Origin: Selaginella moellendorffii
Lineage: Eukaryota; Plantae; Lycopodiophyta
Assembly: GCF_000143415.4 (NCBI RefSeq)
Contig: NW_003314280.1
Span: 922,235 to 986,234 of the forward strand
Length of the DNA stretch: 64,000 nucleotides
Direction of reading: 5' to 3'
Shown here in pieces: positions 49,043 to 58,666 of the stretch. Positions within the stretch are counted from its first letter, which is position 1, and each line of letters opens with the position of its first letter. Both the position numbers and the translations under genes were made by a program. The notes under the pieces were generated by a model, which was given only the letters and a program-made list of their open reading frames with translations, was not told the origin of the DNA and searched no databases.

Positions 49043-49342
49043 TCGTGTTAGAACCCTAGATTCGAGGAATATACATGGTTTTCACTTTCTTTTCTTCACC
49101 ATTTTGGTTTAGAACCCTAAGTAGATTCCAATCCATCAACTTTTTCGGCACTGTTTTTTACTTTTTCTCGACTTTTTTTCACTTTTTCTGCGTTACATAA
49201 CGACACATACACCTCCCCCTTTTCTCTCTAAAACGACGATGAAATTTCTTCTTCTGGGACGAGAAAAGATGAAATTTCTTCCAAGCAATCAAATAGCTCA
49301 AATCTCTCTTCCTCTTTCCTATCGCCAAACCATTGCAAATCT

Positions 49343-50816: not shown

Positions 50817-52052
50817 ATGGATCGCTATCAGCGAGTGGAGAAGCCACGAGATGAGACATCGATCAGCGAGAATGAAATTCGCATCACGACGCAGGGCAAG
50901 ACGAGAAACTATATCACCTACGCTATCAGCTTGCTCCAGGTAGAAAATTTTCTTCCTCTCTCTTTCCGGAATTCACTTCTCTTTTCACAGGACAAAAGCT
51001 CTGACGTTGTCTTGAAGGCGATGGGCCGTGCAATCAACAAGACTGTCACCATTGCCGAGATTATCAAAGTAGAGAACGAGGTTTATGCGAGCTCGAGGTC
51101 ACTAACAGTCTTTTTCTCGTCCAGAGGAGGGTCGCGGGGCTTCATCAAATCACCACAATCGGCTCCGCGGACTTCACGGATACTTGGGAGCCGCTCGAGG
51201 AAGGACTTGTGCCGTAAGTTGTTGTCTTTGTTTCCAGCTACCTCATGTGACTTACTTTGCTTTCTCATCTTCTAGTCTGGAAACGACTCGGCATGTTTCT
51301 ATGATCAGTATCACACTGTCAAAGACGGAGCTAGACAGCACCTCATCAGGGTGGGCTTTTCTCAATGTTTCATAATCGTTTCTTGACTTGAGAGAACTGT
51401 CACAGATATCAGGCTCCTCTTCCTGCTGATCAAGTGAAGCCGTTGGTGGAGCCGGAATACGACGGAGGTTTAGTTATCTCTGTTTGTTTTTTCTTCGCCT
51501 GACGGCCGTGCACTTCACAGAAGTATCACCTCGAGGAGGCAGAGGCCGAGGCCGGGGGCGCGGACGAGGCAGAGCTCGTGCTGGAGGTACATGTAGTCTC
51601 GAACGCCATTACGTTTGCTGTAATGCATGTAATCTCCAGGGAACGAAGTTGCGGTCGCTGACTACGGTGGTGGCTACGATGCTGGTTGGGGGCGAGGCCG
51701 AGGTGGCCGAGGCCGTGGAAGGGGCCGCGGGTTCCAAGGCCGTGGTAGAGGCTATGCCACGGAGTTTTATCAGAACACCGGGAGGGGAAGAGGAGGCTAC
51801 GGAGACAACGTTTACGAGGACAACCGGGGCCGCGGTCGAGGCGGATACCAACAAGGCCGGGGCCGTGGTGGAGACGAGTACCAGGAAGTGGCGAACGAGG
51901 ACGCCGGAGCAAGGGGCCGAGGTATGCTTTTCGTTTGAGAGAAACGACTGGCTAAGTTGACAACTATGTCTATCACAGGCCGTGGTCGAGGAAGGGCATT
52001 TCGTGGCGGCCGTCGGGGAGGCGGCAGACCCCGCGGAGGATTTCAGGAATAA
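50817..52052 (+). CDS. Alba-domain RNA-binding protein (Rpp25-like) with RGG-rich tail
   Basis: MDRYQRVEKPR, ENEIRITTQG, LKAMGRAINKTV, WEPLEEGL, TRHVSMISITLS, GRGRGRG repeats. Confidence 0.93.
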
Positions 52053-52244
52053 GACGAGATCTCTCTCTCCATACTTCGTGGTAAAGCCTCTCTCCTCTAG
52101 CGGCATCTTTTGTGTTGACATATAGACTAGCTGTGGTGGTAGTCACCCGAGTTTTCTTGCCTCTGACACGTTACAATTTGGAGGTGTTATATTCCTTTCT
52201 TGTTTCTAACTGTACAAAACAAAAGCTTTTTTTACTGGGAAGTT

Positions 52245-53411
52245 TCAGATCACGTAGTCCAGGATCTCGGAGGTGTGATCCATGCTTTGTCCCGGGAAGT
52301 CGCACGGCGGTGGTGGAGTGACTGCCGCTGCGGTGTTGCGAATGATCCTGGCGGGGACTCCGACCGCGGTGCAGTAGCAGGGAACGTCGATGAGGACGAG
52401 CGTGCAAGCGCCGATCTTGGCACCGTCCCCGACTTTGATTGGGCCGAGTAACGTTGCTCCAGCTCCGATGAGGACTCCGTTTCCAACTTTTGGATGCCGG
52501 TCCATGCAGCGGTTGCCAGTCCCGCCAAGCGTGACGTGGTGGAGAATGGAGACGTTGTCGCCGATGGTAGCGGTCTCTCCCACCACTACGCCCGTGGCGT
52601 GGTCGAGAAACATGCCTTTGCCAACTTGAGCTCCTGGAACTTTGGAAGATCATTGCAAGAAGAGACGAGGAGGTTGGAGGACGTACCGGGATGGATGTCA
52701 ACTTGGAAAACTTCGGAGATCCTGTTCTGGAGTGCCAGTGCCAGTCCCGTGCGATCTTGACGCCAGAGCCTGTGAGAGACGCGGTGCGCTTGGCAGGCCA
52801 GGAACCCCTTGTAGTTGAGCATGCCATGGACGTAGCTTGTGCACGCTGGATCCCTCTCTCTGAAAGCCTTCATGTCCTCTCGCATTGCTTCCTAGGTGCC
52901 AAAGTTCTCCACCCATGAGATGAGATGATCTTGGAAGTTTAGAACTTACTTGTATGCTTGTATCAGCCGAGAAAGTCTCCGAGAACAAGGAGAAGAGCTG
53001 GGTGGAAAGGAGCGTCATGTTTGCTAGCTTGTTGGCGAGGTGGAATGCCAAGGATCTCTCCAGCGAGGGATGCGAAAGAACCGTGGCGTAGAGAAAGCTC
53101 GCGAGGTATGGCTCCGCCTGGGATTGCTCCATTGCTTCTATTCTCAACAATTGCCAAATATCCATGTCCTTCTTTGCTAAATCGTCCTGGAAAAAAGATC
53201 AACACCATGAGAAAGGAAAAACTTCAGTCGCTAAAAAGAGAGGACTATTTACTTGCACACCTGCGCAGCACAGGAATTGGCGGCGATCGGCGGCGCCGTG
53301 GCTCCTCGGCCGCATTGAGCAGTGATCTAATCCGGATCGACTCCATTCGATGTGGTTGCGATCGCCGAGTCGGGGCGGAGAGATTGAGAAGCGGAGCGAA
53401 GAAGACGCCAT
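52245..53411 (-). CDS. SAT: Serine O-acetyltransferase, probably organelle-targeted, multi-exon
   Basis: Transit-like N-terminus; EPYLASFLY, ERDPAC, KGFLACQAHR, VDIHPGA, DHATGVVVGET, TLGGTG, DRHPKVG; C-terminal DYVI. Confidence 0.96.
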
Positions 53412-53648
53412 AGATAGAATTAGCTACAGGGAATTAGGGTTAGGGCTCTTTGGCGCCCAGGAATTTCAATCTTCGTGCCCGCGATCGCGGCATTTTGTCT
53501 TCCATTCGCGCCTAGGGTCGGAGCTCGTGATGGATTCTGGAAGCTGATCGGGTTTTTTCATCCAAAGGGGGATTCTAGACCGCAGGAGATGGAAATCTTG
53601 CATTCCGGGATGAAAGATCGCGGGCAGAGGTAGCAGAAATTCGTGGCG

Positions 53649-56352
53649 ATGGCGGTCGGACCGTCATGGGAGGGGCATCACATCTGGGAAGGTTGGGTCA
53701 CGCTAACGCTCATCGGCCTCATGTTGGCAGCTCTAGTGCTAGAAATCGCCCCTCCATACCTCGTCATGACTGGCACCCTCATTCTCTTTTTGCCGCTCAA
53801 CATCCTCACCTTGGATCAAGCTCTTCACGGGTTTGGCGATCACGCGGTGCTCTCGATTGGCGTTCTCTTCATCGTTGCCAAAGGTAGCTCTAAGTTTGTG
53901 ATTGATTGATCGCCCACATTTTTTTCTTCTTTGGTGATTCAGGTATCGAGCAGTCTGGAGGTCTGGAGTACGTCTCTAGGCTGCTCTTCAGAGCCGACGA
54001 TGATAAGAAGGAAGACAATCCAGCGAAACAAGGGAACATCGTCGGAGTGATGCTGAAGTTCACGGTTCCTGTGGCGATTTTTAGTGCGTTCCTGGCCAAT
54101 ATACCACTGGTGGCGATGATGATTCCGCCGATTGTGGAGTTCGCGAAGAAGGTACGCGGCTCTCGTTACCTTTCTCATGCCAGTGTTCCATGGATTCGGT
54201 CCGGTCGTGAAAATGCTTTGTTTGCTTGACTTCATTCATGTAGGTGCATATGGCTCCGTCAAAGCTGCTCATGCCTCTGAGCTTCGCTGCGCTCTTGGGT
54301 GGCACGCTGACATTGATTGGAGCCAGTACAAACCTGGTAGTTGTCTCCCTGGCCGCGAAGAAACTCCCCGAGCTTCAAATGAATCTGTTTGAGATAGCTA
54401 TTGTTGGTTTGCCTGTGACAATTGCTGGGATTTTGTATATGGTTGCTGTGTCCGGCAAGCTTCTTCCAGATCGTCTTGCAATTCAACCAACGACTATAAA
54501 CGTGAGGTGAAGATTTGTCACCAGGAATCCAACATTAAGATGCACATCATATAATTTCGCGGCACTTGACGAACTCACTGAATTTTTTGTACTGCAGGGA
54601 ATATAGCGTTGTATTAGAGGTGAAGGCAACGTCTTCATTGACAAGGAAAACGATTGAGAGGGCTGGTATCAATCGTCAACCAGGGCTCAACCTCGTTCAA
54701 ATACAGAGAGAAGGTGTAGTCACTCCAAATCCTGGGCCAGACTTTGTTATAATGCCCAAAGACAAGCTACACTTTGGTGGTGTTATAGATGCAGTACTTG
54801 GTTTGACACAGTTAGATGGATTGGCTCTTTCAGAGAGTGAGGTACGCTCAAGATTAACAATTTTCTTTTAGACTCGCTCATTTGTTGTGCGCAGGGTGAA
54901 GAGCAAATCGATTTGAATCGGTTGAAGATCAATCAGTGCCTAGTTGAGGCTGTTGTTGCAAGTGGATCTCCGATGGTTCACAAGCGCGTTGCTGACTTGC
55001 AACTCCGAGCACGTTATAAAGCTGCTATAGTTGCTATCCATAGATATGGAGTGCGACTTAGCAGGTAAGCTATCTTCTTCGTACGTCGTTTGTTGCAACT
55101 GTGTTCTTTCTTTATAGTGCGATTGGGGACATAATCTTGGAAGCTGGAGATTCACTTCTTATGGTGGCTGATGGGACAGAGTTCGTTGCGAAGAATCGAA
55201 ATAATTCTACGTTTGCGCTTGTTGCAAAGGTAGCATGCCTACTTTGCTTGTGAAATGTAGTGCCCTTCATAAAGTTCTGATTTTGTGCAGCTGCCAGGAT
55301 TTGTGCCGGTGCAGCGACATAAAGCTGGAATTGCAGCGTTGATTGTTCTCGCTTTTGTGGTTGCAAGTGGCATTGGTGTTGATCTTATCACGGCTGCTTT
55401 GTTCACGGCATTCTTTTTGTTGGCGACGAAGTGTCTGACTCCTAGAGATGCAATGGTATAATATTTGCATTTCTGACAGCATCAGCATCTGACGTCGTTA
55501 TTCTTCTCAAGCTTTACAGGAATCTATAGAATTACCGGTTCTGATTCTGATCGCTTCGTCCTTTGGCATCTCAGAGGCCATGGTCCAGAGTGGTGCAGCA
55601 GATATGGTGGCAAAAGCCCTCATGGGTCTTGCAGGTACCACAAAAGTAAGAACTATCACCCTTCAGAGAATAGGCCGTTGTTACTAACTAATCTTCGTTC
55701 GTGCCTTGCAGTTTGGTCTAATCAGTTGCACATACATTGCAACAACAGTTTTCTCGCTGGCTATCACGAATAACGCTGCTGTGACGATTATGTTCCCAGT
55801 TGCTCTCACAGCGGCTCAGAAAGGAAATCTCGATTTCAGACCGTTTGCCTACACGCTCATGATGGCATCATCGGCAGGGCTGATGACCCCCACTGGCTGT
55901 GCAACAAATCTCATGGTTTACTCCCCGGGTGGCTACAAGTTTGCGGACTACGTTGTTTATGGTGGTCCTATGCAAGTAAGTTCTTCCGTCAACTTAAACA
56001 GGAGTGTCATGTTTAATGCAGATATGGTTACTGGTTGTGACAATTGGAGTGACGGTGACTATAGAATGGTGGTGGGCATGGACCATAGCGATATTTATTA
56101 CCACAGTCGCTACCACACCGATCTGGATGAGACAGGTTCTTCTTCCTCCATTTACGTTCCTCTCCACTGAAGTTTGTTTCGATGCAGCCTTGGAATCTGA
56201 TAAAGTCTGGACCACTTTCCTCTGCCGAAGATCAGGAGGCCGCGGCAACGTCCAGGGGACGCCGGGGCGACGAAGAAAGAGTTTCTCTCACAGGCGGAAG
56301 CAGCAGTCGCGGTAGTACCAGTTCGGCTTTCATGCTGGCGTCGCAACAGTGA
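53649..56352 (+). CDS. SLT/SAC1-type SLC13 (CitM + two TrkA-C domains) putative Na+/sulfate cotransporter, multi-exon
   Basis: WEGWVTL...PPYLV, GIEQSGGL, SAFLANIPLVAMMIP, PSKLLMPLSFAALLGGTLTLIGASTNLVV, two TrkA-C-like cytosolic repeats, ITNNAAVTIMFP, TPTGCATNLMVYSPGGYKFADY..YG. Substrate is inferred. Confidence 0.88.
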
Positions 56353-56410
56353 ATTTGCATTTAGCTGTACATAGCTGAAGCTCATCAAGGTCCTGGAAAG
56401 CTTTTCTTTT

Positions 56411-58666
56411 TCACCAGAAGTCGCCACACGAGCAGCAGCCATCGCTAAAGACGTGGAACCGGCTCGCATCTCTACACACAATGCGCCTGTTTTCCACCTT
56501 CGACAAAACAGCAGTGGCTCTGTGACAGTCATCGCACACTCTCAAGTTCTTGGCAATCCGTATCACCGTACCGGGAGCTGTATTAACGAGTGCAAATGCA
56601 ATGGCCAGCTTTTCGCTGTGGCCACAGAGAAGATTTTCCTTTTCAACGTCAGAGACATGGTGGACGAGACAGTTCTGGTCGGGAACATATCCTCCGGCCT
56701 TCATCTTCACTAGCACTTCCTCGAGCTTCTCCACGACGCCTTTGTGACGGCTCCAGTCTCCAGCTTTGAAACTGTGAACGTTCCCGGCCTCGTCGGTCCA
56801 CCAGCTCAAGCCGGGTTTCTTCCACGCCCGGAAGTTGTTCTTCATGATGAGCACCTGCGACTGCTCCTCCCACATCCCAGCTCTGCCGTAAATGTCCGCC
56901 ATCGACATATAAACAGCAGCGTCCTGCTCGTCGATCCTCAGCAGCGATTCAAAGGCCAGTCGCCCGACTCCAACGTTGGTAAACTTCTTGGCCGCGGCAA
57001 GTATCGTCTTCCAAGTCACTTGGTCCGCTTCAAACGGCATCTCGTGGACCAACTTCACGGCACTGTCAAGGTGATTGGCTCGGCCAAGCATGTCGATCAT
57101 GCAGTGGTAGTGCTTCATCTCGCGGCGGATTCCCAGCTTCAACGTCATGACCTCGAAGAAGTCCAGCCCGGATTCAACAAGCCCGGCGTGGCTGCAGGCA
57201 GTGAGAACGGACAGCAGAGTTACACCGTTGGGTTGAACGTCGGCTTCTCGCATGCTGTGGAACAGATCAAACACCTTGGTCGCGTCTCCGAGGTGACTAT
57301 ATCCTGCTATGAGCGAGCTCCAAGTTATCACCGTTCTCGCTCTCCCGGGCATCGAGTGAAAGACAAGCTCGGCTTCGGACATGCTGCCGCACTTCCCGTA
57401 GAAGTCCACCAGGCAGTTCGCAAGGAACATATCCTTATGGAGCTCCCTCCTGGACACAATCTCGGCGTGGAGCTTTCGACCGGTTTCTAGAGCTGCCAAG
57501 TTCCCGCAGACCATCAACGCGGCAGCGAAGGCTCGAGCATCCGGCTGCGTCGGTGCCATCCTTGAGAAGAGTCTCAGCGCTACTTCGGACTCCCCGTTCT
57601 CAGCGTAGCCGAGCATCAGCGAGGTCCAGGAGACCACGTTCCGCTGCTGGTGCTGGATGCTGTCAAACACCTTGCGGGCCTGGATCATGTTGCGGCACTT
57701 GGAGTACATCTCGACGAGCGAGTTGGCAACGAAGATGTTGGCGGCGACGCCGCTCTCCGCCGCCTGGGAGTGAAGAACCGATCCTTTCTCCTCCAGGCTC
57801 TGGATCAAAGCAGAAGAAGCGGCGTCCTCGCCTCTGGCCGCTGCCGCTGCCAAACTGGAACACGCCGTCAACGCAGCAACGAAAGTTCTGGCCTCGGGTG
57901 CTACTCCGATCATCCTGGAAAAGAGCTCCAGCGCGAGCTCGCCACTGCCGGTCTCGGTGTAGCCGAAGAGCAGCGAGTTCCACGACACGACGTCGTGCAG
58001 CGGCATCCTGTCGAAGACCATCCGAGCGTCGACCATGCTGCCACACTTGGCGTACATCGCCACCAAGCTATTCCCGAGAAAGGTGGTGCTGGAGTCGATC
58101 ATACTGCTAGCAGCGCGAGCGTGGATTCGCATGCCAAGCTCCAGCGATCGCGGTTTCACCACCACCGTCTTGGGATCCTCGGTTCCCTGTCCATGCTCGG
58201 TGTCGGCCATGGTGGAACACGCAGTGATGGCTGCGACGTAAGTTCGCGAGTCGGGTTGTATGGACTCGTCGTGGAAGAAGAGCTCGAGAGCTTTGTGGCC
58301 GTCTCCGTTGTCAGCGTAGCCCAGGATCACGGCGTTGAGGAGCGCCAGATCGTGGCAAGGGAGCTTATCGAAGAGCGATCGAGCGTCGGCCATGGTGCCG
58401 CATCTAGCGTACATGTCGATCACGCTGCTGGCGGCGACAATGCCTGTGCCAGGAGGGAGAAGAGATTTGGAGGAGAGAAGATAATGGATCCTCTTACCGC
58501 AGTCTAGGTCTCGCAGCGCCTTGCAAGCTCTCAATGCCGCGATCCAGAGAGGAATGGGGGAAGAATCGTGGAGCAATGCCGCCGTGATCGTGCTCCTGAC
58601 CGCGATCCAGATGGCCTGATCGAGTAGATTGCTTTGGCGAGTGACGAGGCATCGCGGGATGGCCAT
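56411..58666 (-). CDS. PLS-E-DYW PPR protein (C-to-U RNA editing factor), intronless
   Basis: PLS repeats, PG box (KKPGLSW), HSEKLA, KNLRVCDDCH, RDASRFH, CSCGDFW. Confidence 0.96.
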   Translation of the reverse strand: MAIPRCLVTRQSNLLDQAIWIAVRSTITAALLHDSSPIPLWIAALRACKALRDLDCGKRIHYLLSSKSLLPPGTGIVAASSVIDMYARCGTMADARSLFDKLPCHDLALLNAVILGYADNGDGHKALELFFHDESIQPDSRTYVAAITACSTMADTEHGQGTEDPKTVVVKPRSLELGMRIHARAASSMIDSSTTFLGNSLVAMYAKCGSMVDARMVFDRMPLHDVVSWNSLLFGYTETGSGELALELFSRMIGVAPEARTFVAALTACSSLAAAAARGEDAASSALIQSLEEKGSVLHSQAAESGVAANIFVANSLVEMYSKCRNMIQARKVFDSIQHQQRNVVSWTSLMLGYAENGESEVALRLFSRMAPTQPDARAFAAALMVCGNLAALETGRKLHAEIVSRRELHKDMFLANCLVDFYGKCGSMSEAELVFHSMPGRARTVITWSSLIAGYSHLGDATKVFDLFHSMREADVQPNGVTLLSVLTACSHAGLVESGLDFFEVMTLKLGIRREMKHYHCMIDMLGRANHLDSAVKLVHEMPFEADQVTWKTILAAAKKFTNVGVGRLAFESLLRIDEQDAAVYMSMADIYGRAGMWEEQSQVLIMKNNFRAWKKPGLSWWTDEAGNVHSFKAGDWSRHKGVVEKLEEVLVKMKAGGYVPDQNCLVHHVSDVEKENLLCGHSEKLAIAFALVNTAPGTVIRIAKNLRVCDDCHRATAVLSKVENRRIVCRDASRFHVFSDGCCSCGDFW

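Follow-up and report, generated by a model that had tools for sequence, protein, structure and literature searches.

A serine acetyltransferase gene head to head with a SAC1/SLT-like transporter gene in Selaginella moellendorffii: a probably incidental pairing

We analyzed a pair of divergently transcribed genes in the seed-free vascular plant Selaginella moellendorffii, in which a serine acetyltransferase (SAT) gene on the minus strand stands head to head with a plus-strand gene for a SAC1/SLT-like membrane protein of the SLC13 family. The pair lies in a 64,000-nt stretch of contig NW_003314280.1 (922,235-986,234), hereafter the window, and all positions are numbered within it. An initial annotation, which had rightly taken the DNA to be that of a seed-free vascular plant, proposed that the two genes form a physically linked, co-regulated sulfur module. 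Our results do not support a special, selected module of this kind: no such pair is found at eight orthologous loci, the gap between the genes and the telo-box-like element within it are common to the local divergent pairs, and the spacer has no known sulfur-responsive element. We consider it likely, at a probability of about 70%, that the pairing is incidental and lineage-specific and that it brings together two ordinary, separately functional nuclear genes with no sulfur-specific regulatory logic.

Both genes are already annotated, and the transporter family has been reported from Selaginella before (Takahashi et al., 2012; PMC3355512). The pair had been put forward as one without earlier description; our own literature search found no description of it either, and a search with the gene identifiers likewise gave no match.

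Two ordinary genes

The start codons are located at 53411 (minus strand) and 53649 (plus strand) with 237 bp between them, as the initial annotation had placed them, and its outer coordinates, 52245 and 56352, are the ends of the two stop codons. The window represents one haplotype. On the other haplotype (scaffold GL377626.1) we observed the same SAT(-)/transporter(+) arrangement with the same 237-bp gap, at an identity of 97.6% across the pair. For RNA evidence, we placed on positions 51900-56700 the transcriptome contigs of four runs from four studies (X1, X2, X3 and X7), the stretch being present in twenty public runs. Because the contigs are spliced, they are transcript assemblies. Both genes are transcribed in all four runs. 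The contigs retain the commonest path only and give no isoform ratios, and their depths do not rank expression; their ends are distinct from mapped transcription starts.

By its sequence, the minus-strand gene is a serine acetyltransferase (SERAT). Its coding region (52245-53411) comprises four exons (53411-53253, 53186-52950, 52891-52687 and 52633-52245), and all three introns (52634-52686, 52892-52949 and 53187-53252) are confirmed by contig joints, each with GT..AG on the minus strand. The model translates without an internal stop into 329 amino acids, and a gene of the same length is called in the other haplotype. Pfam identifies SATase_N (PF06426) in exon 2 (E=8.5e-19) and exon 3 (E=2.8e-11), which jointly cover profile positions 1-105, followed by Hexapep (PF00132, E=1.3e-13). 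The best solved relative of the last exon is soybean SAT (4n69; E=2e-45 over 125 amino acids), and DHATGVVVGETA is kept in the alignment to 4n69 and 4h7o. The motifs of the catalytic His (DHATG) and Asp (VDIHPG) are both present, the latter read directly from the model, and the top NCBIfam models for the SAT pieces are those of serine O-acetyltransferase (cysE, PRK11132). The protein ends in DYVI, with the stop at 52245. Pfam, the 4n69 match and the translated model therefore uphold the SAT identity and the DYVI tail of the initial annotation, the C-terminal Ile being established as a residue check only. In the cysteine synthase complex, the C-terminal Ile of SAT inserts into the active site of O-acetylserine(thiol)lyase.

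Compared with plant SERAT proteins and soybean 4n69, the Selaginella SAT has the same two domains in the same order, SATase_N and then the left-handed beta-helix of hexapeptide repeats, the same DHATG His and VDIHPG Asp and the same ...DYVI tail. It differs by a lineage-specific N-terminal extension of 53 amino acids and a short Pro-rich insert before the C-terminal tail, and is otherwise ordinary. The extension is rich in Ser and Arg (9 Ser, 8 Arg and 4 acidic residues) and resembles a transit peptide, suggesting that the SAT is probably organelle-targeted. A single X2 contig shows an alternative junction of intron 1 (53185-53260) that removes 74 nt instead of 66, reaching 8 nt further into exon 1.

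The domain content of the plus-strand gene (53649-56352) is that of a SAC1/SLT-like SLC13 (DASS/CitMHS) membrane protein with TrkA-C domains, the only one in this genome. The model has 11 exons set by contig joints and reading frame: 53649-53883, 53943-54151, 54244-54506, 54598-54841, 54895-55064, 55118-55229, 55291-55455, 55520-55645, 55712-55975, 56022-56135 and 56188-56352. Contigs support 8 of the 10 introns (53884-53942, 54842-54894, 55065-55117, 55230-55290, 55456-55519, 55646-55711, 55976-56021 and 56136-56187); those on either side of exon 3 (54152-54243 and 54507-54597) have no contig joint and were placed from GT..AG sites and the reading frame. The fully spliced form, which includes exon 3 and uses acceptor 55520, encodes 688 amino acids with a stop that ends at 56352. 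It agrees with EFJ26391.1, XP_024533226.1 and XP_024545096.1 save for splice-site choices.

Exon-level Pfam searches on the plus strand returned CitMHS, TrkA_C and Na_sulph_symp. The two transporter halves are matched by PF03600 (CitMHS) in two stretches (E=2.5e-51) and by PF00939 on the C-terminal half, and the central loop carries a TrkA-C domain (PF02080, residues 333-392, E=1.5e-16) preceded by a weaker copy in exon 4 (E=2.6e-5); two TrkA-C stretches score in the orthologues of Physcomitrium and Diphasiastrum. These halves and loop domains fit the SLT/SAC1-type SLC13 protein with TrkA-C that had been proposed. The identities of both genes are far beyond chance.

A transporter for di- or tricarboxylates or another anion, rather than sulfate, would share no pathway with SAT. 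We regard this as unlikely. It draws on the closest relatives outside the streptophytes, which among the matches listed are bacterial SLC13-TrkA-C permeases (41-42% identity) and choanoflagellate proteins, the bacterial ones being mostly named 'di/tricarboxylate transporter'. Sequences of Chlamydomonas SAC1/SLT were found neither among the best 120 nor among the best 150 matches, and ten long or SAC1-sized representatives checked for them proved to be Paulinella, Diphylleia or metagenomic proteins instead. NCBIfam, moreover, assigns only the general DASS subfamily, below its cut-off. However, the bacterial names are automatic and some of these relatives are labelled 'Sulfate permease, Trk-type', while the NCBI name of the Selaginella protein, 'putative sulfur deprivation response regulator', is taken from SAC1. 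A published tree also groups the Selaginella protein with Chlamydomonas SAC1/SLT1-3 (PMC3355512); the grouping rests on that tree, which is without bacterial sequences, and not on our own. At the level of architecture, the protein has the same SLC13/CitMHS halves as Chlamydomonas SAC1 and SLT1-3, parted by a cytoplasmic loop with TrkA-C (RCK-C) domains.

The SAC1/SLT family occurs in green algae, bryophytes and lycophytes, with a homologue in Selaginella and Physcomitrella and none in the angiosperms analyzed (Takahashi et al., 2012; PMC3355512). We found SAC1/SLT-like genes of the gymnosperm Taxus chinensis (KAH9328313.1 and KAH9328315.1, on a 1.05-Gb chromosome record) inside the vascular-plant clade. 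The family's loss therefore did not extend to every seed plant, in disagreement with the 2012 statement that seed plants have no homologue. In Diphasiastrum complanatum, a second copy of the transporter (CM055111.1) lacks introns and encodes 660 amino acids in 1983 bp. No other genes are called within 10 kb of it, and its branch is longer than that of the paralogue, which has introns and extends over 12 kb. This copy looks like a retrocopy with an intact frame.

Transcript starts and the shared promoter region

The 237 nt between the start codons (53412-53648) are nearly all transcribed. The SAT contigs end at 53430 (X1), about 53428 (X3) and 53420 (X7), and the transporter contigs start at 53428 (X1) and 53464 (X3). 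The 5' untranslated region (UTR) of SAT thus reaches to about 53420-53430 and that of the transporter begins at about 53428-53464, taking up about 185-220 of the 237 spacer nucleotides if the contig ends are taken at face value. In X2, one unbroken contig (53260-53881) carries minus- and plus-strand splice junctions together, indicating that the two mRNAs overlap enough for the assembler to merge them. We observed directly that the transcript ends abut, and from these contig ends, as distinct from mapped starts, we infer that the two transcripts have their starts only a few bases apart, at a telo-box-like element. Since the upstream region of each gene lies inside the other gene, a shared promoter region for SAT and the transporter is very likely. 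The probable bidirectional promoter of the initial annotation is in this respect well supported by contig ends that fall within a few bases at about 53428-53430 and are merged in one run.

The telo-like motif it had noted in the spacer is TTAGGGTTAGGG at 53434-53445; the minus strand reads CCCTAACCCTAA, and the core AACCCTAA occupies 53434-53441. Its statement that the spacer has no core of the sulfur-responsive element SURE holds for both strands (GAGAC/GTCTC). Neither an EIL-type site nor a TATA box is present in 53412-53648. The leader of the transporter contains two upstream open reading frames (uORFs) within the 5' UTR shown by the contigs: one of 5 codons (53530-53547) and one of 14 codons (53589-53633), the latter sharing the frame of the main ORF and ending in TAG.

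The 12-mer TTAGGGTTAGGG has one match and is not significant alone, as at least one match was obtained in 12 of 100 shuffles. The 8-mer core AACCCTAA behaves differently: 11 copies are found in the window against 1.07 expected, an approximately 10-fold enrichment that none of 100 shuffles reached. These sites span positions 6191-61403 and include those at 49113, 50608, 53434, 58734 and 61396. In the annotated 15 kb around the pair, each of the five copies is found 23-191 bp before an annotated ATG; the three divergent gaps there hold one each, and another copy precedes the ribosomal protein S6e gene (RPS6e). The core therefore looks like a general core-promoter element of this genome and not a sulfur signal. 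In Arabidopsis, telo-boxes mark the promoters and 5' UTRs of many housekeeping genes. The Selaginella element shares with the plant telo-box (AAACCCTAA-type) the placement near start codons, including that of RPS6e, and the strong enrichment, but is doubled as a TTAGGG-type hexamer instead of the 7-mer plant telomere unit.

Conservation, spacing and chance

We checked synteny at eight orthologous transporter loci from seven other streptophytes, using 10-kb flanks, gene tables and tblastn with the SAT model. The loci were those of Diphasiastrum complanatum (two), Adiantum nelumboides, Physcomitrium patens, Riccia fluitans, Calypogeia fissa, Closterium sp. NIES-65 and Ceratopteris richardii, the last by its gene table only. 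Their orthology is backed by the transporter tree, which agrees with the species tree: the streptophyte clade is supported at 100/100, and lycophytes, ferns, mosses, liverworts and Zygnematophyceae are each recovered. The gene is single-copy in streptophytes, with two loci in Diphasiastrum. At none of the eight loci (0/8) was a SAT found among the called neighbours within 10 kb of the transporter orthologue, and tblastn with the SAT model, applied to all species but Ceratopteris, gave nothing in the 10-kb flanks even at E=10. The initial annotation had held that an adjacency unique to this genome would refute its module; across the lycophyte, ferns, bryophytes and streptophyte alga covered, the adjacency is indeed unique to this genome. 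A search with transporter exon 1 (78 amino acids) for gene calls of exon size on short contigs from other Selaginella species found nothing.

In Closterium, a PAPS_reduct gene (595 amino acids) lies about 9.4 kb upstream of the transporter orthologue, and we considered it as a trace of an ancient sulfur neighbourhood. We dropped this candidate: it is separated from the transporter by two unrelated genes, its domain is found in FAD synthases as well, and it has no counterpart in the other species. The gene could encode an APS reductase or an FAD synthase, and its position is probably coincidence.

The spacing of the pair is equally unexceptional. The annotated 15 kb contain three divergent pairs, Arf-like/Alba-like, SAT/transporter and PPR-DYW/AP-mu, with ATG-ATG gaps of 399, 237 and 250 bp, respectively. 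Convergent neighbours in the same 15 kb are 60-190 bp apart and their transcripts are merged in the assemblies. Their 3' ends overlap: contigs of the plus-strand Alba-like RGG-tail gene (intron 51920-51976) continue into the 3' end of SAT at 51919-52245, and at 56315-56425 contigs of the transporter continue past its 3' end into the PPR-DYW gene, which has its stop at 56411, only 58 bp from that of the transporter. As both the spacing and the telo-box are common to all three local divergent pairs, both are generic.

Assuming about 22,000 genes and 30-80 sulfur-pathway genes (our own figures), 0.04-0.3 adjacent sulfur-sulfur pairs are expected per genome, or about 0.1 at about 50 sulfur genes. 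This number is low, but it is not negligible for a scan of thousands of windows for any theme.

These results bear on the proposal of a selected, co-regulated sulfur module of Selaginella or Selaginellaceae, in which the zero-spacer promoter would couple O-acetylserine synthesis to a sulfate transporter or sensor, both rising under sulfur limitation. We find this proposal improbable. The functional link between the two products, known in general and from PMC3355512, speaks for it, as do the abutting or overlapping transcript 5' ends, the presence of the pair in both haplotypes and a nominal a priori chance of such a neighbour below 1%. However, the pair is not conserved at the orthologous loci, the unrelated Arf/Alba-like and PPR/AP-mu pairs have the same spacing and telo-box, no known sulfur-responsive element is present in the spacer, and the comparison with chance is post hoc within a genome-wide scan. 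Nor does the agreement of the haplotypes say anything about selection, because they are only 2.4% apart. A comparison of the haplotypes as a test of constraint on the spacer was likewise uninformative (identity of 97.5% in the spacer, 96.6% in introns and 99.6% in exons).

Set against divergent gene pairs with a shared bidirectional promoter, the SAT-transporter pair has the same opposite orientation, an ATG gap below 1 kb, abutting transcript ends and a single shared core-promoter motif. Retention in evolution is part of what defines a conserved bidirectional pair, and here the SAT-transporter arrangement differs: it is not retained outside S. moellendorffii at the eight loci of seven species, and divergent pairs of this kind are the local norm in this genome.

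Transporter splice forms and the meaning of the pair

Non-productive transcripts of the transporter are clearly common. Exon 3 (54244-54506, 263 nt), which covers CitMHS profile positions 117-189, is missing from the main assembled transcript in three runs: a GT..AG joint 54151|54598 is found in X1, X2 and X7 and shifts the frame, with a stop after 150 amino acids. Depth over exon 3 is lower in X1, X2 and X3 and coverage is zero in X7. Intron 7 has two acceptors separated by eight bases (55512-55519) according to contig joints. The upstream one, with an exon start at 55512, is used in X1 and X2 and shifts the frame, with a stop after 5 codons; the productive junction (exon start 55520) shows up in X7 alone, as a loose end of 15 nt. 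We rejected the RNA-supported acceptor 55512 as the coding form on account of this early stop and took 55520. The last intron (56136-56187) is removed in X2 and X7 but stays in the transcripts of X1 and X3, where it leads to a different C-terminal tail with a stop at 56315. Its retention explains the two C-terminal tails of the two NCBI models. In the Psilotum and Taxus models, the equivalent of exon 2 is joined directly to that of exon 5, in frame, and alternative splicing after exon 2 may thus be old in vascular plants.

We read the frame-breaking events as splicing-level control or noise and not as decay of the gene, because both haplotypes have an unbroken frame and conservation of the protein is good. 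A more elaborate possibility is a lineage-specific, operon-like sulfur circuit of a eukaryote, in which the zero-spacer bidirectional unit would be induced as one by sulfur limitation and the transporter/sensor arm would be gated by the uORFs and by switchable frame-breaking splicing (exon-3 skipping, 55512 versus 55520). This we consider quite speculative and very unlikely. The idea that the transporter gene is losing function, with most of its mRNA mis-spliced through exon-3 skipping and the acceptor 8 nt upstream and the pairing of no consequence for sulfur uptake, is also very unlikely: the longest assembled transcript (X2, 2203 nt) does hold both frame-breaking events, and exon-3 skipping recurs in three studies with exon 3 uncovered in X7 and early stops from both events, but the full frame is intact in both haplotypes at an exon identity of 99.6%, the protein is 77% identical to its Diphasiastrum orthologue and sits on a short branch of the tree, three runs have coverage of exon 3 and X7 shows the productive intron-7 junction, contigs that record the commonest path say nothing of isoform ratios, and the skipping after exon 2 in Psilotum and Taxus suggests regulated, not decaying, splicing.

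We therefore return to an incidental pairing as the best explanation. SAT and the transporter would stand head to head because this genome packs its genes very tightly, the pairing having probably arisen by chance in the Selaginella lineage. The two transcripts would start nearly back to back around the generic telo-box core-promoter element at 53434-53445, and the proximal promoter of each gene would lie inside the first exon or 5' UTR of the other. SAT and the transporter probably have an open promoter region in common, which is usual for divergent pairs. The output of the transporter seems to be controlled mostly after transcription, through its two uORFs and its frequent frame-breaking splice forms.

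Several points weigh against an incidental pairing. The products are functionally connected, O-acetylserine being both a precursor of cysteine and a sulfur-starvation signal, and divergent pairs with abutting starts tend to be co-expressed. The a priori chance that a sulfur gene is one of the transporter's two neighbours is only 0.3-0.7%. Flanks of 10 kb are small for the large genomes of ferns and clubmosses, the synteny comparison covered species outside Selaginellaceae only, and the abutting starts are read from the ends of contigs and not from mapped transcription starts.

A functional pairing would be a rare instance in plants of one promoter serving both a transporter or sensor and a pathway enzyme, and would also offer a way into what SAC1-like proteins do in land plants. 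On present evidence, the pairing mainly illustrates how easily a compact genome yields suggestive neighbours. The analysis has in addition provided an RNA-supported model of the Selaginella SAC1-like gene, much of whose mRNA is non-productive, and has revealed a telo-box at nearly every promoter in the region.

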